NCBI RefSeq assembly: GCF_001194135.2
Contig: NC_068983.1
Span: 100,083,331-100,147,330 of the forward strand
Reading direction: 5' to 3'
DNA length: 64,000 nt
Source of the DNA: Octopus bimaculoides
Lineage: Eukaryota
Positions 5,136 through 62,493 of this stretch are shown piece after piece (within the stretch, counting starts at the first letter, position 1; each line of letters begins with the position of its first letter). The notes beneath the pieces are model-generated. The model was not told where the DNA came from, searched no databases, and was given only the letters and a program-made list of their open reading frames with translations. Position numbers and translations under genes: made by a program.

Positions 5136-5715
5136 GTGTGTGTGTGTATACATATATACACATATATATATTGTTTGACAATTTTCTCTTAACCAGATCC
5201 TGACGTTTGAGAACGTATATTGTAAATTCCAAGTGGACTACTACTCAATATAAATTACATACTTTTAGACATCAAAAGGATGGGGAATTATAAACAGAAA
5301 ATGGAAAGCTCAACGGCAAATTAATAACTATTGAAGTTACTGAATTGCACAATAATGTTAAAGAAAAACAACAATTTAACTTCTACAGAATCTATTTATA
5401 GACTGTTTAATCGACTTTGCAGATATTAACTGATACTATCTCTTACTCTCTCCTTCGCCCACTACCTTTGTTTTCAATATCATGTTAGTCATGCGGCCTT
5501 CGTTCTTCTAACTGTTATTATTTTTCATAACTATAGTCACTACTATTACAAAGCTCTTTCAAATTCCGCCTATGTCGACATTGCTTTTCATTCTTTCGAG
5601 GTCGATAAATTAAGTGGCAGTTGAGTGCTGGGGACGATGTAATCGACTTATCCCCTACCTCACCAAATTTCAGTCTTTTTGCCTTTTGTAGAAAGAATTA
5701 TTACAGACTTGTTAA

Positions 5716-5920
5716 GGCGGCGAGCTGGCAGAGTTGTTAGCACGCTGGAGGAAATGCTTGGGGGCATTTCACTCGTCGCTACGTTCTGAGTTCAAATTCC
5801 ACCGAGGTTGACTTTGACTTTGACTTTCGGGGTCGATAAATTTAGTATCACTTGAACACTGGGGTCGATGTAATCGACTCCTCTCCACAAGCTACCCTTG
5901 TGGCAAAATTTTGAAATAAT
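5716..5920 (+). mobile_element. tRNA-derived SINE, family B (a partial copy also lies at ~5569-5700)
   Basis: Head GGCGGCGAGCTGGCAGA...GTTCTGAGTTCAAATTCC and body GGTCGATAAAT..GTACCAG. Confidence 0.9.
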
Positions 5921-6320: not shown

Positions 6321-6698
6321 CTGCAGCAGCACAGACAAAACAAAAAATAAAATTGTACAAAAACTTGCTAAAAAACACTCACAAACTAGATAGATCTTAT
6401 TCGACACTGCAACACATGTAGCACTTTGCATACAGTTATCAAGCATCCCGTCTCCCAAGACTTGTACTTTTTATTTCATCGACCCTGGAAGGATAAAAGA
6501 CGAAGTCGACAGTTGCTGGATTTGAACCCAGAAAATAAAACACCATAACTAAGTACTGCAAATCATTCACCTGCAAGCTTCTCCATTTGAAAATAGTATT
6601 AAATGTGAAGGTGTATACTAAGATAAACAAGAAATTAAAAAAAAGCAAACGTCATCTCTTTCTCTTTCTTTACTGTTTATATTTGGACCCATTTTAAA

Positions 6699-6910
6699 GG
6701 CGGCGAGCTGGCAGAATCGTTAGCTCACTGGGCGAACTTCTTAACGATATTTAGTTCGCCTTCATGTTCTGAGGTCAAGTTCCGTCGAGGTCGACTTTGC
6801 TTTTCATCCTTTCGAGGTCGATAGATTAAGTACCAGTGAAACACTGGGATCGATGTAATCGACTAGTCTCCTCCCCACAAAATTCAGGCCTTGTTCCTAC
6901 AGCAGAAATG
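6699..6910 (+). mobile_element. SINE family B (a degenerate minus copy lies at ~6440-6590)
   Basis: Same head and body as the 5716 copy. Confidence 0.9.
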
Positions 6911-7084
6911 ATTTGCTATAAGAAGAGGGTTGTAACTTGCTCGAAGCATTGTGATAGAGAAGCAAAATAAAATAGTAAATGTGAAAAGAAATAAGTTTAA
7001 TAACTTTTTTATATATTTCAGGCACAACAGCTCATCATCATCAGAAGTAAACAGGCAAGATATGTTAGTCTGTATAGTCACAGG

Positions 7085-12603: not shown

Positions 12604-12733
12604 TATTAGAATAGCTACAGGGGAAGAGCAAAAGAAAGAAGTTCTAAGGAAGTAAAATTCTTGGGATGAAGATGTGAATGGACTAACATTCGTGATGACA
12701 CCAAGAAGTAGAGTAATATAAATAATGAATTAA

Positions 12734-12950
12734 GGCGGCGAGCTGGCAGAAACGTTAGCACGCCGGGCGACACGCTTAGCGGTATTTCGTCTGTCTTTAC
12801 GTTCTGAGTTCAAATCCTGCCGAGGTCGACTTTGCCTTTCATCCTTTCAGGGTCGATAAATTAAGTACCAGTTGCGTACTGGGGTCGATCTAATCGACTT
12901 AACCCCTCTCCCAAAATTTCGGCCCTTGTGCCTAAAGTAGAAAAGAATAT
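12734..12950 (+). mobile_element. SINE family B, full length, followed by (GA)-rich repeats to ~13125
   Basis: Near-consensus copy. Confidence 0.92.
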
Positions 12951-13063
12951 AGATAAAGAATTCAGAAGAGAGAGAGAGAGGGAGAGAGAGGGGTGAGAGA
13001 GAGAGAGAGACAGAGAGAGAGACAGAGAGAGAAAGAGAGAGAGAGAGAGACAGAGAGAGAGAC

Positions 13064-14480: not shown

Positions 14481-14870
14481 TTGTTGTTGTTGTTGGCACT
14501 CCGTCGCTTACGACGTCGAGGGTTCCAGTTGATCCGATCAACGGAACAGCCTGCTCGTGAAATTAACGTACAAGTGGCTGAGCACTCCACAGACACGTGT
14601 ACCCTTAACGTAGTTCTCGGGGATATTCAGCATGACACAGTGTGACAGGGATGACCCTTTGAATTACAGGTACAACAGAAACAGGAAGAAAGAGTGAGAG
14701 AAAGTTGTGGTGAAAGAGTACAGCAGGGTTCGCCACCATCCCCTGCCGGAGCCTTGTGGAGTTTTAGGTGTTTTCGCTCAATAAACACTCACAACGCCCG
14801 GTCTGGGAATCGAAACCGCAATCCTATGACCGCGAATCCGCTGCCCTAACCACTGGGCCATTGCGTCTCC
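14481..14870 (-). mobile_element. tRNA-derived SINE family C, inserted in (ACAT)n
   Basis: Reverse complement of 22725-23101, with A- and B-box-like head and a (CAA)n tail. Confidence 0.92.
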
Positions 14871-18374: not shown

Positions 18375-18841
18375 TAGCGCCACCTTAAAACATGGGCAAA
18401 CTAAGCAGTTTCCCAGTGGCCCAATTCTAATCTATATATAAGCCTAGGAGCCCAATTCTAATCTATGTATGCTGTGTCTTGTCAGTAAATAAATACTATA
18501 GGGCCCAGTGCATTGATTTGCTCAGGGACCTATAATGCTGCTAAGAGGCGCACTGAGCAGTTGTCCAGGGTGCCCAAAAGTCTAGGGGACCTATTCCAGT
18601 CTATCTATGCTGTGACTGGTTGTCAGTAAATAAATACTATAGGGCCCAGTGCATTGATTTGCTCAGGGACCTATAATGCTGCTAAGAGGCGCACTGAGCA
18701 GTTGTCCAGGGTGCCCAAAAGTCTAGGGGACCTATTCCAGTCTATCTATGCTGTGACTGGTTGTCAGTAAATAAATACTACAGGGCCCAGTGCATTGATT
18801 TGCTTGGGGGGGGAGCTATAATGTTGCTAAGAAGATCCTGC
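18375..18841. repeat. 141-bp tandem repeat made of head-to-tail MITE-like units
   Basis: GTCAGTAAATAAATACTA recurs at 18481, 18622 and 18763. The outer ends resemble degenerate CAGGGCCG.CTTAA...TTAAG.CGGCCCTG TIRs. Confidence 0.85.
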
Positions 18842-19165: not shown

Positions 19166-20249
19166 GTTGCTGTCCAATGGTTAAAGTAAGTAAAAGAGTA
19201 AAAAGGCAATAGCTAATTAACGTTAATTCAAAAGTAAATCTGCTTCAGTTTAAGCGCATGGCTTTATGAATATATCATTGGACGTCACCACAAACAGTTA
19301 TGAGTTGAAGTAGGAATTGTATACATCAGATATGCACAAAAATATCCTTTACACTGGAGATAAATACCGCCTCCATCAACCAAAATAAATAAATATGGGT
19401 AAACATTATCAATATCACATATTTAATGTATGCGTGTTGTTAAACGCTTGTAGCTGTAGTATTTCGTCTGAGAAGGTATCCTTAAAGACGTATAGTGTTA
19501 AAAAACACTTAAAGAAATCGCCCTGGAAATGGAAAAGAACGACAGATATCGATATTTCATACTTTTTTCTGTTCATCAGTGTCATATACTTGACCCACCT
19601 CCAAAACGAATCCGCAACAGCTAGCTAGAATATACGAATAGCGTAAAATCTATTTGCTGATGTGAAAAAGCGCTGCACAAGCGCAACAAAATCCAAATTT
19701 TGTGTTAGAAGCAGCTCATTTTTTATTTATTTTTTTTGCCGTCTTATATATTTAAAATAAATCATAACCGTCACTCGCAAGCAAGTATGACTTTGTAATA
19801 TGTAATTGTAATTGTTATAGTTGCCTCTCTTGTCGCGGACAGATATAGGCACTCACCCGGCCCTCCCACTCATGAACCAACAGGACATCGACGATCTGAC
19901 AGCTAGAGCGAGAGAAAGGGCTTCACCAGCATTCAGTTGGTACCCATCTCTGGCTGAGTAGAGTGGAGCAACGAGAAATGGAATCATTTACTCAAGGACA
20001 CAATGCACGCCGGTTTGGTATGTCGAGATTTTTACGGCAGGAATACCTTTGAACATGGATCTTCCCGATGAAGGCTGATGTGGGGTTAAACAAAATAAAA
20101 AAATGCCAATGGAGCACAATTACCAGTGTGGTACCTTTGATATCATCACAAACGTAATCAAACAAAACGATAAAAGCGTTTGACCACTTTGATGGCGAAA
20201 CAATAACCTAATCTTCATATTATAAGAAATTCTAAGAGACGAATTGGAA

Positions 20250-20555
20250 GAATCGTTAGCACACCGGACAAAATGCTTAGCAGCATTTCGTCCATCTTTA
20301 CTTCTGAGTTCAACTTTGCCTTTTATCCTTTCGTGGTCGATGAAATAGGTACCAGTTGAGTACAGAGGTTAATTTTATCGACTATCTCCCTCCCCAAAAG
20401 TTCAGGCTTTGAGTTTCTACTAGAAAGGATTATGAGAAGTTCTAAGCGGCGGGCTGGCAGAATCGTCACCGCACCGGACAAAATGCTTAGCGGTATTTCT
20501 TTTGGCTTTATATTCTGAGTTCATGTCGCCGAGGTCGACTTTGTCTTTCATCCTT
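20250..20555 (+). mobile_element. Two adjacent SINE family B copies, the second running into a gap
   Basis: Heads at ~20250 and ~20446. Confidence 0.8.
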
Positions 20556-22724: not shown

Positions 22725-23101
22725 GGGGTGCAATGGCCCAGTGGTTAGGACAGCGGACTCGCGGTCATAGGATCGCGGTATCGATTCCCAGACCGGACGT
22801 TGTGAGTGTTTATTGAGCGAAAACATCTAAAGCTCCACGAGGCTTCGGCAGGGGATGGTGGCGAACCCTGCTGTACTCTTTCACCACAACTTTCTCTCAC
22901 TCTTACTTCCTGTTTCTGTTGTACCTGTAATTCAAAGGGTCAGCCTTGTCACACTGTGTCACGCTGAATATCCCCGAGAACTACGTTAATGGTACACGTG
23001 TCTGTGGAGTGCTCAGCCACTTGCACGTTAATTTCACGAGCAGGCTGTTCCGTGAAACTGGAACCCTCGACGTCGTAAGCGACGGAGTGCCAACAACACA
23101 C
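22725..23101 (+). mobile_element. SINE family C, full length, with a 13-bp TSD
   Basis: ATATTACGAATCG at 22712-22724 and 23102-23114; head TGGCCCAGTGGTTAGG...GGTATCGATTCCC. Confidence 0.95.
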
Positions 23102-47155: not shown

Positions 47156-47977
47156 ACACGCGCAACTACAAATACTTCCAGTTGTTTTCGATTCTCCTCT
47201 CTTCATTCCTAATACTTATTTCTCTGTTTCAGTTATAAAATAATCGAAGAAGTACCTGACGTTATAAAGTTTATAACAGTTGTATCCAGGATTTATCGTT
47301 ATACATCTTTTATGAAGGAAGTTAGGAATACAGTTATTAATACATCGAAAGTTGGAAACTCCAAATATATAAGATATACCATACCGTTACACCTCTTTTA
47401 CAAAGATATTGAAGAACACAGTTATTAATTAATAAACAGATAGTTGGGAAAACCCCGTATCTAAGACATACGATTAGATTCATTTTACGAAGGAAGTTAA
47501 AAACAGGGTTACTAATATATAGATAATGACTTGATCTAAAAGGCATGTGTTAAATCGTCAGATAGTGAGAAAAATGTCAAACAAAAGCTACAGACACGTG
47601 CACATATACACATACATACACTCACACGCATACGAATGCTATGGTGTGCGCCAATACCCCACCTCTCTCTCACACATACACACACAGTTGATTGTCGTCT
47701 GCGTAATTAGCATGTGTGCACGCCAATAGCGTTCGTATATGTGCACGTGCCAGAAGTGTTTGAAACTCTCTTTTTCATCTCCCTCTCTCACTCACTGTTC
47801 CTTTTATCCCTCTCTCTATCTCTCTCTCTCTCTCTATCTCTCTATCTCTCTCTCTATCTATCTATCTCTCTCTCTCTCTCTCTCGTGCACACAGTTAAAA
47901 TTCTCTTTGCACAGCATGTCAAATCTTTTACTCCACAGGACTCGATCGTTTGTGGCTTTAAAATAATAGAAGAAAAA

Positions 47978-48190
47978 GGCGGCGAGCTGGCAGAATCGTT
48001 AGCACGCCGGGCGAAATGCTTAGCGGTATTTCGTCTGTCATTACGTTCTGAGTTCAAATTCCGCCGAGGTCGACTTTGCCTTTCATCCTTTCGGGGTCTA
48101 TAAATTAAGTACCAGTTGCGTACTGGAGTCGATCTAATCGACTGGCCCCCTCCCCCAAAATGTTGGGCCTTGTGCCTAGAGTAGAAAAGA
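47978..48190 (+). mobile_element. SINE family B, near consensus
   Basis: Full head, body and tail. Confidence 0.93.
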
Positions 48191-48879
48191 AAATAATAGA
48201 AGAAAGAAGACAGGCAGAATTTTTTTAAAACACGGTGAAAAGTGAAGGCGCATGGCGTAATGGCTAGAGGTGTTGGACTTACAGTCATTTGATTGAGGGT
48301 TCGGTCCTTGGGCTGGGCGGTGCCTTGCATATTTGAGTATTTTACGTTGATTCTATGCCTGGAAATTACTTCTACGACGGACTCGCGTCTCGATCACTGT
48401 GAATGTCTTGTGCTTTCAGTCTTTCAGCCTTAAAAATATAGATAGGCTTCGATCTCATAAGCATATAGACTCCAGACAAATATATATGATAAAGAAATTG
48501 CAAAAATCTTTATATTTTTATTGTTTAAGGTACCACGTCTATAAAAAAAAAACCTTTTCGTTTACTTTTATTTCAGGAAAACGTAATTGAATGTGACCAA
48601 AATGTTCTTTTAGTTTAAATAGCTGATGTAAATACCTACCATATTTTCTGTCATACAAGTCGATGTAGTATAAACATGTAACATGAGCATTCAAACATCG
48701 TTTCTATCTTTCCAAATCCTGTTGCATTTCACATGGAATTTTTAGTCCTCCAAAGCTGTCTTGATGTCGACTTCGAGTCTAAGTTTTTGTCAAAGTCGAC
48801 TTTGGCTCTAAGTTTTTGTCTGGAAAATTCAACATGTATACCGAAAAATACGGTAACTTTCTTATTATTGGTTTCAAAT

Positions 48880-49203: not shown

Positions 49204-49975
49204 AACATGCTGTTTAGTGTCCATAAAAAGTGAAAGTAAATTGCGATAGAAACCGGAAGTGACGACAGGGTAATTCCATAATTTCATTATAATTATGTGA
49301 CATGGAAAGGCGGCGAGCGGGCAGAATCGTTAGCGCGCCGGACGAAATGCGGTATTTCACCTGTTGCTACGTTCTGAGTCCAAATTCCGCCGAGGTCGAC
49401 TTTGCCTTTCATCCATTCGGGGTCGATAAATTAAGTACCAGTAAAACCCTGAGGTCGATGTAATCGACTTATCCCCTCCTCCAAAATGGCTGCCCTTGTA
49501 GCAAAATTTGAAAACATAATTATATAATATGAAAACGATTCATAAAGTGTACATGTAGCATTTTCCCACAGTTTCTGAACCTATTTCACTACTTATGTTC
49601 ATATAGATTCGAAGTAAATAAAGCATCACATGTTCCGTATTGTCACCTGAGTTTCTTCTTGGTGAGTATTCCTGCCCTACGATGGCCTGTGCATATATGC
49701 TCTCATTGTTGGATCAACAAAATTTTTTAAATGGTTCACAACTTCACAGCTATATATGAAGGCCTAAACTAACATAGGAAGCCTACCTATCGCATCCTTG
49801 TGGCTTTACATTCACGTTCATTGTTATGTATACTACGTTGCAGTGATGTGCCCCAACTGCTATTTCAGAAATGCTCGTGCAAAATGGGTGCTAGTAATTA
49901 TGAAATTGTGTAATTCCACTAACGACACTTCCGGCGCATTTACTTTCACTTTTTTACGATTCTAAACTGCATGTT
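49204..49975. mobile_element. Old TIR element with ~80-bp inverted arms, containing a SINE B at 49309-49510
   Basis: AACATGC.GTTTAG...AAAAAGTGAAAGTAAAT.GCG...CCGGAAGTG.CG at both ends in inverted orientation. Confidence 0.7.
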
Positions 49976-50739: not shown

Positions 50740-50826
<87 letters not shown>

Positions 50827-51040
50827 AGGCGACGAGCTGGCAGAATCGTTAGCACTCTGGACGAAATGTTTAGAGGTATTTCGCCCGTGGCTACGTTCTG
50901 AGTTCAAATTCCGCCGAGGTTGACTTTTCCTTTCATCCTTTTGAGGTCGATAAATTAAGTACCAGTGAAACATTGGGATCGATAAAATCGACTTATCCCC
51001 TCCACCAAAATTGTGGATCTTTTGGCAAAATTTGAAACCA
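50740..51040 (+). mobile_element. (AGT)n microsatellite (50740-50825) followed by SINE family B
   Basis: Direct reading. Confidence 0.9.
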
Positions 51041-61079: not shown

Positions 61080-62493
61080 TGTAATGTTATTGTGGTAGGA
61101 GGAACCCAGTAAAGAAATACATGGAACAAAGGTGATAACTTTAAATAGTTTATTGTCACACGTATATATACACAAGCTGAATGGAAGTGGTTGATGGATA
61201 TTTATTCCTATATCTACATGCAACTGCGTGGGTTGTATGTTAGCTGTTAACCCTGGTGAGGAAAGCTCGCGGACAGCGATATGTTAGAACCAGTGCAGTG
61301 CGTTGGTGCTGAGTAGATGTTGTTGACGACGTTGGTGAGAGACATGCTGGGGGCGACGAAGATGGAGGTCGCTGCAATGTGGTTAGTGGTTAGACCTTAG
61401 AAGGTCGGGAACCAACAAACACTGAGACTAGAAGGAGGTGAGCTTTTATAGCTGATGGTAGACTCAAATGTTGTTTGAAACAGACTGTCTCACGTGACTT
61501 ATTTGAAGGCTTGGATCATTTATGTTTTATGTAGTGTTTTTGGTACCGAAACACTTTCAAACTTCGTATACTTGTATATTTTGTGTTATAGAACAGATAA
61601 AAATTTTTGTATTCGAAGTTATTTCATGTAAAAAAAAAATTGTCGTATTTCGGTAATTTCAACCAATCACTGATGTCTATTGAGGTGAAAACAATTACTG
61701 CCGTGGCATGTAAACAACATGTTCTAACGGTGTCATGGGATCTTTTCCCTTGAATAAAATTAGTGCCGTAGTTTGTCAACAACAACTATCCGTGGTACTG
61801 TTATTTATGACATCGTTCGTGCGTTTGTACTGGTTTTAGCTTTAGGCTTTTAGGGTTAGGGTTCGGGTTTTAGAGTTAGGGGTAGTTTTAGGGTTACGGT
61901 TAGAGTTATGATTATTTTTGCCATAACCTCACTCATAACCCTAACCCTAACCCGAGCCCGAACCCTAAAACTCTAACCCTAACTCTAAAACCCGAATCCT
62001 AACCCTAAAACCCTAAACCCTTACTAGAGAATAATGATATAATTAAACAAGGAATAACACTCTTGACACCGGCAAAAATTATTGTTTACAAAAACAGCAA
62101 TAACTGTATTCAGCTGAATAGACGTCAGTGATTGGTTGAAATTACAGAAATACGACAACTTTAACATGAAATAACTTGCGATGTACAATTTTTTGTTAAG
62201 AAGGCTAAGAGAAAAAGTTGTTTTATATGACACATTCTACCAGTATCCCAAGTTTGAAAGTGTTGCGTTAAGAAAACAAGTGGTGCCCGTCAAATCAGAA
62301 AGATCCGAAGGCTGTGATTGGTTGGGTTGCATACTGACGCGCGATAGAGTAAGAGAAAATTGCGCCAATACCAACCAATTAAAGTGGTAGACACAACGGG
62401 GTCCAAATCAGCGCCCAAAGGTTAGCTGTTACCTGCTACGTTCGTAAGTACTTATATATAATAGAGAGAGGAAGTTCACTAGAGTTCGCTAGA
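61080..62493 (-). mobile_element. Solo LTR copy 4, split by the foldback insertion
   Basis: 61200-61512 and 62307-62493 are collinear with LTR3 once the insert is removed. Confidence 0.8.
61513..62306. mobile_element. 794-bp palindromic (foldback) DNA transposon with central head-to-head telomeric arrays
   Basis: GGATC...GATCC termini; TSD GAAGGCT(T/G); homologous inverted arms; TTAGGG-type array at ~61836-61911 and CCCTAA-type array at ~61923-62021. Confidence 0.9.

Follow-up and report, generated by a model that had tools for sequence, protein, structure and literature searches.

In foldback elements the terminal inverted repeats (TIRs) are long; they consist of a flanking domain and internal tandem repeats and enclose a small non-coding middle. 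Tetris makes target-site duplications (TSDs) of 8-10 bp, and those of Galileo have 7 (sometimes 8) bp (PMC4079207, PMC4168063). The TSD is 7-8 bp in the P superfamily and in Galileo-like elements (PMC5199201, PMC4168063) and 8 bp in the Merlin superfamily (PMC10045372). The working definition of a MITE is an AT-rich, non-coding element of <800 bp with TIR and TSD (PMC5199201). Repeats of the telomeric type occur in several other settings. Fusion-type ITS, such as that at human 2q13, have the inward-facing layout (TTAGGG)n-(CCCTAA)n (PMC6410037, PMC9498494), and ITS, above all head-to-head ones, are routinely taken as chromosome-fusion scars, as in a slug genome paper (PMC12506671) and in ITS reviews (PMC6410037, PMC9498494). 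How the many ITS on metazoan chromosome arms arose has been termed a mystery (PMC9071541). Telomerase inserts short ITS at double-strand breaks (Nergadze et al.; TERC-ITS) (PMC8537989), and endonuclease-deficient Penelope-like elements (PLEs) of the Athena/Coprina type end in species-specific telomeric repeats (PMC4522978). Tetrahymena Tel-1 and Oxytricha TBE1 are described as transposon-like elements that include internal telomeric repeats (Cherry & Blackburn 1985, cited in PMC2831315).

The insert considered here lies in a 64-kb window of Octopus bimaculoides DNA, which is the whole stretch that was analysed. Its inverted-arm architecture is that of Drosophila FB, Tetris, Galileo/Kepler/Newton, sea-urchin TU and Chironomus TFB1. 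However, foldback elements are measured in kilobases whereas the octopus element has 794 bp, and, unlike the known foldbacks, its tandem-repeat domain is innermost, next to the centre, derived from TTAGGG and built on a 20-bp higher-order unit. The GGATC termini are also unlike those of known foldbacks, and the comparison is one of structure. The perfect 7-bp duplication matches the TSD length of the P superfamily and Galileo-like elements; compared with the 8-bp TSD of Merlin, the duplication can be read as 8 bp with one mismatch or as 7 bp perfect. The Galileo target consensus is GTANTAC, which fits neither the octopus target GAAGGCT nor the GAAAATT flank of a second copy, and because of this departure the element is not filed as Galileo. 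Merlin and Mutator, which had been brought in for comparison at the outset, are candidate superfamilies at most. An autonomous partner would carry an IS1016-like DDE transposase in the case of Merlin and a THAP-domain P-type transposase in the case of the P superfamily and Galileo-like elements. Size, AT-richness, non-coding state, TIR with TSD and a presumed mobilisation in trans are shared with MITEs. MITEs are further characterised by a high copy number (families of >=3 copies); the ~270 kb examined contain one complete copy (in the 64-kb window) and one partial copy (in O. sinensis). The element differs from MITEs in its minisatellite core.

Head-to-head arrays are common to the octopus element and fusion-type ITS, but in the octopus they are mirror copies inside a TSD-flanked insert whose flanks are contiguous in paralogs. 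The telomeric repeats of Tel-1 and TBE1 are at the element termini and the hosts are ciliates, whereas the octopus arrays are central, the termini are unrelated to telomeres and the host belongs to another group. TERC-ITS resemble the octopus element in having, at an internal site, a telomere-like tract that is short and degenerate; however, their tracts are unidirectional and lie directly in the break, without the arms, TIR and TSD that the octopus element has. PLEs are likewise mobile and carry telomeric repeats, but they are retroelements located at telomeres with 3'-terminal repeats, while the octopus arrays are central and accompanied by neither RT nor ribozyme. A search of a limited body of literature brought up no foldback element or MITE whose telomeric core is described as head-to-head.

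Structure of the insert and its target site

The features of the locus are collected in Table 1. Each arm of the palindrome is ~400 bp long and consists of an outer unique domain of ~285-320 bp, ending in ...AAAGATCC, and an inner telomere-like minisatellite; the arms join at a spacer of ~14 nt, inside which the palindrome centre falls (~61917-61918). The global alignment of the insert with its own reverse complement scores 353, whereas 100 shuffles score -212 +/- 29. The original prediction of a 794-bp imperfect palindrome with GGATC/GATCC ends is therefore upheld, by a self-alignment far above the shuffles and by termini read directly from the sequence, and single-strand folding, which had been proposed as a check, gives a single extended hairpin (-169.5 kcal/mol, z = -14.8). 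No more than 5 bp of the TIR are perfect, and because the entire insert is palindromic the TIR is not evidence separate from the palindrome.

Table 1. Coordinates of the element, its parts and the host repeat in the 64-kb window
Feature	Position	Strand	Basis
Inserted element, non-coding imperfect palindrome, 794 bp, 35% GC	61513..62306	.	
Left terminus GGATC	61513..61517	+	read from sequence
Left arm outer (unique) domain	61513..61835	+	gapped arm-vs-arm alignment
Best-conserved arm block, left copy, with CAACCAATCACTGA	61636..61704	+	inverted repeat I1, 69 nt, 87% complementary
Left degenerate telomere-like array, G-strand toward centre	61836..61910	+	TRF, unit dissection
Central spacer / hairpin loop (ATTATTTTTGCCAT)	61911..61924	.	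sequence, self-alignment, fold
Right array, CCCTAA on + strand; TTAGGG-like on - strand toward centre	61925..62021	-	TRF, unit dissection
Right arm outer domain	62022..62306	-	gapped arm-vs-arm alignment
Best-conserved arm block, right copy	62094..62162	-	partner in inverted repeat I1
Right terminus GATCC (…GAAAGATCC)	62302..62306	+	read from sequence
Left target-site duplication GAAGGCT (+T at 61512)	61505..61512	+	sequence; motif single in uninterrupted paralogs
Right target-site duplication GAAGGCT (+G at 62314)	62307..62314	+	sequence
Host repeat unit, ~300 bp, split by element (61378-61512 + 62307-62485)	61378..62485	+	blastn of insert-less flanks; four-way alignment
Uninterrupted host-repeat paralog ("empty site"), 74-79% identical	60081..60381	+	blastn, four-way alignment
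Second uninterrupted host-repeat paralog	55175..55485	-	blastn, four-way alignment
Third uninterrupted host-repeat paralog, 69% identical	57546..57747	-	blastn, four-way alignment

The outer domains of the two arms are 81-83% identical in ungapped columns, with many indel columns in addition, and the arm-to-arm divergence is about 16-24%. If the original arms were near-perfect mirror images, this would correspond to roughly 8-12% per arm. A segment of ~75 bp (about 61760-61835) is found in the left arm only and has no counterpart in the right arm, while a 21-bp block (62198-62218) is present in the right arm and in the O. sinensis copy but missing from the left arm. The idea that this second asymmetry is older than both copies was dropped, since a deletion in the left arm fits the three unrooted sequences equally well. 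The best-conserved arm block is kept also in the O. sinensis copy. A 12-nt likeness of the arm block to the host flank (GTGATTGGTTG) was judged to be chance or common CCAAT-box-like composition.

Palindromes are a known artefact class in long-read and amplified libraries, and a chimeric palindromic read, introduced at sequencing or assembly, is a conceivable source of such an insert. Artefactual inverted duplications are near-identical in sequence, however, and because the arms of the octopus insert diverge, by about 17-24% in aligned columns and with indels of up to ~75 bp, it is not regarded as an assembly artefact. The clean TSD and the presence of a related arm in an independent assembly of another individual or species also speak against this explanation, which is extremely unlikely.

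The insertion point is crossed without interruption in all three host-repeat paralogs, and at the empty site the nearest of them reads ...TATCTGAAGGCTGCGATTGG..., with the GAAGGCT motif once. The TSD, known from one complete copy, can be counted as 7 perfect bp or as 8 bp with a single mismatch (GAAGGCTT vs GAAGGCTG). An insertion with a 7-8-bp TSD had been proposed, and the three uninterrupted paralogs with a single site bear it out. An uninterrupted copy of the repeat had been called LTR3; the motif is indeed single in such copies, but an LTR identity is at most putative, and the repeat is described here as a ~300-bp unit. Four copies of this unit are clustered in 7 kb of the window; other octopus DNA (~207 kb) contains none. 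Its CCAAT-like and TATA-like motifs are downstream of the insertion.

The same alignment decides the case of a relic of an ancestral end-to-end chromosome fusion. The head-to-head (TTAGGG)n-(CCCTAA)n layout, as at human 2q13 (PMC6410037), would agree with such a relic, but the arrays are copies of each other and lie inside a 794-bp TSD-flanked insert. The empty-site alignment refutes a fusion at this locus, as the flanks are the halves of one ~300-bp unit that is contiguous in three paralogs, and the probability left to it is practically nil.

The longest ORF of the insert has 69 amino acids, and this arm ORF, used as a probe against the protein collection, found no homologue. Nothing in the insert or the whole window reached the Rfam gathering threshold; the best sub-threshold matches are miRNA-hairpin look-alikes (MIR8706, 34.6 bits vs a gathering score of 95), and apart from such look-alikes neither a hammerhead ribozyme nor any other Rfam family was found in the insert at E<=1. 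There is no RT ORF within or beside the insert, and no transposase was seen near the window copy or the O. sinensis copy.

These searches bear on a retroelement origin. PLEs often form inverted or tandem partial dimers. The insert would then be a tail-to-tail inverted dimer of a short retroposon or of a Penelope-like element with 3' telomeric repeats, in keeping with the telomeric ends of the endonuclease-deficient members (PMC4522978), but no hammerhead ribozyme or Rfam family and no RT ORF is present in or beside it. Both outer ends are moreover defined as GGATC/GATCC with a fixed short TSD. Target-primed reverse transcription leaves 3' tails at the outer junctions, whereas the telomere-like "tails" of the octopus element are central. 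A retroelement dimer is thus given only a very slight probability.

In its general organisation, the insert combines the characters of two known classes. As in foldback elements, the arms make up nearly the whole length, the middle is small, tandem repeats lie in the arms, there is no coding capacity and the TSD is short. As in MITEs, a non-coding sequence of 794 bp with 35% GC has defined ends (GGATC/GATCC) and a TSD of 7-8 bp.

The second copy and the case for transposition

The octopus sample beyond the window comprises nine loci of O. sinensis and O. bimaculoides (~207 kb, non-overlapping), which were reached via Helitron Pif1 and LTR-retrotransposon pol proteins. One of them, L005 of O. 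sinensis (CM016874.1), matches the right arm over L005:1-232, with 74% identity over 164 bp in the pairwise alignment (E = 6e-24) and E = 5e-60 in nhmmer. The homology stops exactly at …AAAAGATCC (L005 ~224-232), the same terminus as in the right arm. The copy consists of one arm cut by the edge of the retrieved locus, and any left end, TSD, palindromy and arrays would lie outside. The right flank starts with GAAAATT, so that the right flanks of both copies open with GAA...TG, and is unrelated to the host repeat of the window; it has a sub-threshold Pfam RT_RNaseH_2 match, read as decayed pol, and DNA or protein alignment to intact pol as the empty site of this copy gave no match.

Further copies were sought in the window by blastn with word sizes 7-9 and by nhmmer with an arm profile, which returned the element itself only, and in the ~207 kb of other octopus DNA, arm profile included, where none besides the partial copy was found. 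The conserved arm-core 21-mer, used as an exact pattern, had 0 matches in metagenome and prokaryote-genome contigs, and a degenerate 26-mer derived from three arms had 0 matches in metagenome, prokaryote-genome and viral contigs, as expected for animal DNA. A lack of other copies had been named in advance as an observation that would count against a mobile family, and one second arm with its own flank in O. sinensis answers this at least in part. L005 could be the terminal portion of a longer relative with the same arm, in place of an element of the same type; such a relative would still support mobility of the terminus but not the presence of the arrays family-wide. Elsewhere in the O. sinensis sample, L008:16173-16281 is a unidirectional degenerate ITS that is unrelated to the element, and an inverted repeat search around it gave a score of 36 vs a shuffle maximum of 37, no better than shuffles.

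The shared terminus also bears on a non-transposon origin, in which the insert would be a one-off patch at a staggered double-strand break and the 7-bp duplication would come from fill-in. The source of the patch could have been a sister-chromatid-fused chromosome end, or a fold-back copy of a captured telomere-bearing fragment. Fusion of sister-chromatid ends predicts both the arm layout (unique sequence, then inward G-strand repeats) and the mirror order of the variants; the variants are similar to those of proximal telomere or subtelomere arrays, the TIR adds nothing beyond the palindrome, and there is a single complete copy. What a patch does not predict is that exactly this terminus, ...AAAGATCC, recurs in O. 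sinensis at another locus and next to an unrelated flank. The clean 7-8-bp TSD points to a transposase as well, such duplications being typical of transposase-mediated integration and not of end joining. A one-off repair event is therefore considered improbable, and the insert is probably a copy of an octopod class II DNA transposon that is non-autonomous and of the foldback type (palindromic over its whole length).

Such a transposon would be mobilised in trans by a transposase of the DDE type, whose staggered cut spans 7-8 bp and which recognises the termini together with subterminal arm sequences. The palindrome probably arose while a parent element was being repaired or replicated, through fold-back or template switching, and the switch point was possibly at the G-rich array. 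The arrays would have been within the element before it inserted, because both arms carry them and because the arms have diverged by about 16-24%, roughly as much as a TSD that has 0-1 mismatch in 8 would lead one to expect. The consequences are likely those of palindromic MITEs generally, with hairpin or cruciform potential and, if the element is transcribed, a hairpin RNA.

The telomere-like arrays

TRF finds period 6 in both arrays (TTAGGG at 61850-61908, TAACCC at 61936-62008), but periods 20 and 40 outscore it. The 20-bp higher-order unit is TTTTAGGG-TTAGGG-TTCGGG. Units of the left array run TTTTAGGG TTAGGG TTCGGG TTTTAGAG TTAGGGG ... TTTTAGGG TTACGG TTAGAG, and in the right array the variant units are ordered as in the left, with a few extra units near the centre. 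The two arrays are ~80-100 bp long, contain 4 (left) and 6 (right) perfect TTAGGG units, and are 91% identical in ungapped columns. Both contain sequence motifs capable of forming G4. All nine matches to the telomere-like dimer TTAGGGTTAGGG (<=1 mismatch) in the 64-kb window fall inside the element, where 0.16 would be expected. In both arrays, as read from the sequence, the G-strand leads 5'->3' to the centre, as it does in an end-to-end fusion. The original prediction was right on these descriptive points: a degenerate TTAGGG array faces a CCCTAA array; the inward layout is confirmed by the G-strand directions; and the assignment of TTAGGG as telomere repeat agrees with the cephalopod telomere motif as determined by experiment (PMC13218726).

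Because the same variant units occur in the same order in both, the arrays are not two telomeres; they mirror a single minisatellite of 20-bp period that was already degenerate. Since they mirror one minisatellite, the head-to-head layout is therefore a by-product of the palindrome. In terms of mechanism, the (TTAGGG)n-(CCCTAA)n arrangement would have arisen geometrically when an element with a telomere-like minisatellite became palindromic, and would not be a trace of telomere biology.

The layout had been interpreted as a transposable mimic of a fusion site. The transposable part of this claim is supported by the TSD-flanked insertion and the second arm, while the layout as a consequential property is not, the arrays being mirror copies. 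In its functional form, the claim is that a selected or consequential mimic would break at its centre through cruciform resolution, leave ends that telomerase could extend from their seeds, recruit telomere proteins or mark fission and fragile sites. With the observed G-strand orientation, a break in the middle would leave properly directed seeds on both sides, the long hairpin gives cruciform potential, both arrays contain G4-capable motifs, and the arrays (91%) are somewhat better kept between the arms than the outer domains (81-83%). However, low-complexity repeats can be aligned with some freedom, so that an excess of identity in the arrays is to be expected. New-telomere seeding generally requires longer and purer arrays. 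These are short, at ~80-100 bp, and degenerate, and contain 4 and 6 perfect hexamers. The copy itself has stayed intact and lies deep within a cluster of repeats rather than at a breakpoint. As mirror copies, the arrays can have this layout without any functional explanation, and a role as functional mimic, argued from sequence, is judged very unlikely.

Meaning for octopod genomes

Two wider scenarios concern the family as a whole. In the more far-reaching one, the element would belong to an abundant octopod foldback family whose core is conserved and active; putative protein binding, G4 or cruciform formation and central breaks would provide telomere seeds, and the family might shape chromosome fission and fragile sites and be the source of some of the ITS on chromosome arms that lack an explanation. 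This is a long shot. The milder and likelier reading is that the arrays are family-wide but inert, in which case hundreds to thousands of pseudo-fusion ITS would be spread across octopod genomes; this is somewhat less likely than not. If the family is abundant and its core conserved, its copies would need masking before the karyotype history of cephalopods is reconstructed from ITS, and they would offer a natural set of short inverted telomere-like repeats for fragility tests. If the arrays are peculiar to the window copy or to a subfamily, the element would simply be another foldback MITE. At this locus a mobile palindrome flanked by a TSD yields a fusion-like ITS without any fusion, and the main value of the octopus element is as a warning to those who read ITS as fusion points.

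Insertion of a palindromic element into a local repeat

The original prediction described a palindrome with GGATC/GATCC ends that had inserted with a 7-8-bp TSD, and both parts hold. The two halves of the 794-bp element (61513-62306) are inverted copies of one another, with the symmetry centre at ~61917-61918 within a ~14-nt spacer. Aligned globally to its reverse complement, the element reaches a score of 353, where shuffled sequences give -212 +/- 29, and the single strand folds into one long hairpin of -169.5 kcal/mol (z = -14.8). Without the element, the sequences on either side join into a single unit of a ~300-bp host repeat, whose three further copies in the window are all continuous through the insertion point (3/3). 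The closest of these reads ...TATCTGAAGGCTGCGATTGG... and has the motif GAAGGCT once, while the motif occurs twice around the insert; the TSD is therefore either an exact 7-bp repeat or an 8-bp repeat with a single mismatch.

The four host-repeat copies lie within 7 kb in mixed orientation and are 69-80% identical. The unit has two or three CCAAT-like boxes and one TATA-like box, with similarity stopping shortly past the latter. Since no copy was found in ~207 kb of non-overlapping octopus DNA, sampled as nine loci around homology-search proteins, the host repeat seems to be a set of promoter-like units clustered locally and not an LTR family dispersed through the genome.

The arms of the element are 81-83% identical in their outer domains and 91% in their inner arrays (ungapped columns), and they differ by numerous indel columns, among them ~75 bp unique to the left arm and a 21-bp block unique to the right. 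Arms so diverged are incompatible with an artefactual inverted duplication, and an independent copy in O. sinensis also contradicts an assembly artefact, which is excluded. The element has no ORF longer than 69 aa, a search of the protein collection with the 69-aa ORF found no relative, and an Rfam scan gave no family above threshold, the hammerhead ribozyme being absent.

Positions of the element, its host repeat and other repeats in the window
Feature	Position	Strand	Remark
Left bracket	61505-61512		GAAGGCT-T
Left end	61513-61517		GGATC
Left array	61836-61910	+	degenerate TTAGGG, faces right array
Right array	61925-62021		CCCTAA, faces left array
Right end	62302-62306		GATCC
Right bracket	62307-62314		GAAGGCT-G
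Host repeat	61378-62485	+	interrupted by element
Host repeat	60081-60381	+	uninterrupted
Host repeat	57747-57546	-	uninterrupted
Host repeat	55485-55175	-	uninterrupted
Pif1 fragment	1077-1688 (wider 830-1973)	-	Pif1_2B_dom, E = 6e-16
SINE-like copies	5558-5821, 6689-6925, 12724-12960, 20225-20523, 47968-48204, 49302-49530, 50818-51054, 56284-56513		
Inverted repeat pair	14541-14864 / 22730-23053		324 nt, 95% complementary, 7.9 kb apart
AT-rich segment	16001-18000		GC 19%
Tandem duplication	18479-18760		141-bp unit, 2 copies, 100% identical

Other repeats in the window

The Helitron-type Pif1 fragment shares 82% identity with a protein of Octopus sinensis and 75% with one of O. bimaculoides, which marks the window as octopod DNA. 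Its paralogs (88-89% DNA identity) at several loci of both species are annotated as 'uncharacterized protein' genes. A SINE-like family of ~230 bp (GGCGGCGAGCTGGCAGAA...GTTCGA/AATTCCGCCGAGGTCGAC...), with six to eight copies in the window, recurs in the O. sinensis loci (84-92% identity); ARAGORN found no tRNA genes in the window. The 141-bp tandem duplication adjoins the very AT-rich segment, which has long spurious ORFs on both strands. The 324-nt inverted pair has relatives in an O. sinensis locus (L004; 85-91% identity) and probably represents two oppositely oriented copies of another interspersed repeat.

The telomere-like core

The predicted head-to-head centre was also found. In both arrays the G-strand runs 5' to 3' inwards, just as at a telomere-telomere fusion, and all nine TTAGGGTTAGGG matches (at most 1 mismatch) in the 64-kb window fall inside the element, where 0.16 were expected in the window. 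The left array retains 4 perfect TTAGGG units and the right array 6; TTAGGG is the only cephalopod telomere motif determined experimentally (PMC13218726). TRF detects period 6 in the arrays, with periods 20 and 40 scoring higher. Both arms have the unit order TTTTAGGG-TTAGGG-TTCGGG-TTTTAGAG-TTAGGG-...-TTTTAGGG, so the arrays are mirror copies of a single, already degenerate array with a 20-bp higher-order unit, and not a pair of telomeres synthesised independently. As both arms carry the array in the same order, it was most probably present in the element at the time of insertion. An ancestral chromosome fusion would leave a scar of this geometry, but the empty-site alignment and the mirrored arrays both contradict it, and it is excluded.

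The best Rfam match of the core (61856-62002) is the plant miRNA precursor family MIR8706, with a sub-threshold 34.6 bits where the gathering score is 95; it does not indicate a miRNA here. The match is apparently due to that family being itself a hairpin of telomere-like repeats, and such hairpins can thus receive miRNA precursor annotation. A one-directional degenerate array of ~17 units (TTAGGG/TTATGG) at another O. sinensis locus (L008:16173-16281, CM016860.1) has the same 20-bp 'GGGTTTTAGGGTTAGGG..' periodicity as the core. It has no related arms and no significant surrounding inverted repeat (score 36, shuffle maximum 37), and reflects either a 20-bp variant unit common in octopus ITS or the remnant of a related core.

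A second copy, classification and significance

The O. sinensis locus L005 (CM016874.1:27,478,459-27,498,935) starts partway through a right-arm copy (blastn, 74% identity over 164 bp, E = 6e-24; three-arm nhmmer profile, E = 5e-60). Homology ends at ...AAAAGATCC, exactly at the endpoint of the window copy (...GAAAGATCC), and the flanks beyond are unrelated (GAAAATTGTC... vs GAAGGCTGTG...). Translation of the L005 flank shows a decayed domain of the RT-RNase H type (RT_RNaseH_2, E = 3e-6, slightly short of the Pfam cutoff). The same terminus has thus been joined to different targets at two loci, as predicted by a mobile family and not by a one-off repair event. The internal layout could equally result from a single DSB-repair event that captured a sister-fused chromosome end, but such an event leaves the identical terminus of the second copy unexplained. 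The remainder of the L005 copy lies upstream of the locus edge, and what is seen could also be the end of some longer relative. Extrapolated very roughly from one partial copy in ~207 kb, a genome would hold 10^3-10^4 copies, with a Poisson interval of more than two orders of magnitude. The right-hand flanks, GAAGGCTG (window 62307-62314) and GAAAATTG (L005:233-240), share GAAnnnTG, which may hint at a target preference, although two sites prove nothing.

In the 189 columns with bases in all three sequences, unique changes number 13 in the right arm, 17 in the left arm and 30 in L005, giving branch lengths of about 7%, 9% and 16% in a three-taxon tree that is unrooted and thus compatible with arm differences either older or younger than the two copies. 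If the element inserted as a near-perfect palindrome, arm divergence of ~16-24% gives a probability of 0.4-0.6 for 0-1 mismatch in an 8-bp TSD, and the observed mismatch is compatible with it.

The element is best read as a non-autonomous foldback-type DNA transposon, dependent on a putative transposase that would act in trans with a 7-8-bp staggered cut. Palindromising of an element containing a telomere-like minisatellite would automatically produce the head-to-head layout, and the palindrome itself may plausibly have arisen by fold-back or template switching within the G-rich array. The anatomy is that of published foldback elements, with a flanking domain on the outside, tandem repeats further in and a very small non-coding middle. 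Among candidate superfamilies, Merlin elements have GG termini. Their TSDs are 8 bp (PMC10045372), whereas the eighth base is mismatched here. TSDs are 8-10 bp in Tetris (PMC4079207) and 7 bp, occasionally 8, in Galileo (PMC4168063); P-type elements share the 7-8-bp length, but the Galileo target consensus GTANTAC is not seen at this site. Size, AT-richness and absent coding capacity agree with the definition of a MITE (PMC5199201).

Internal telomeric repeats are located at the element termini in ciliate elements (Tel-1, as cited in PMC2831315) whereas Penelope-like elements associated with telomeres carry them at their 3' ends (PMC4522978). An inverted dimer of a Penelope-like element is an unfavoured reading here, as the insert has no ribozyme or RT, its arrays lie in the middle instead of at the outer junctions, and both its termini and its TSD are fixed. 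Literature searches, with Repbase and Dfam outside their scope, turned up no foldback element or MITE described as carrying a head-to-head telomere-like core at its centre. The original prediction also proposed fragile sites, fission healing and recruitment of telomere proteins; these are geometrically possible but find no support here, the arrays being ~80-100 bp and degenerate and the window copy being intact and away from any breakpoint.

Why ITS are so abundant on chromosome arms is unexplained (PMC9071541), and mobile-element transposition is among their proposed sources (PMC6410037). We rate the element as a foldback element or MITE of known type with unusual and potentially misleading cargo. 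Its practical weight is as a confounder where ITS are taken as fusion scars, as in a slug genome paper (PMC12506671), and its interest would increase if the core were family-wide and the family abundant.
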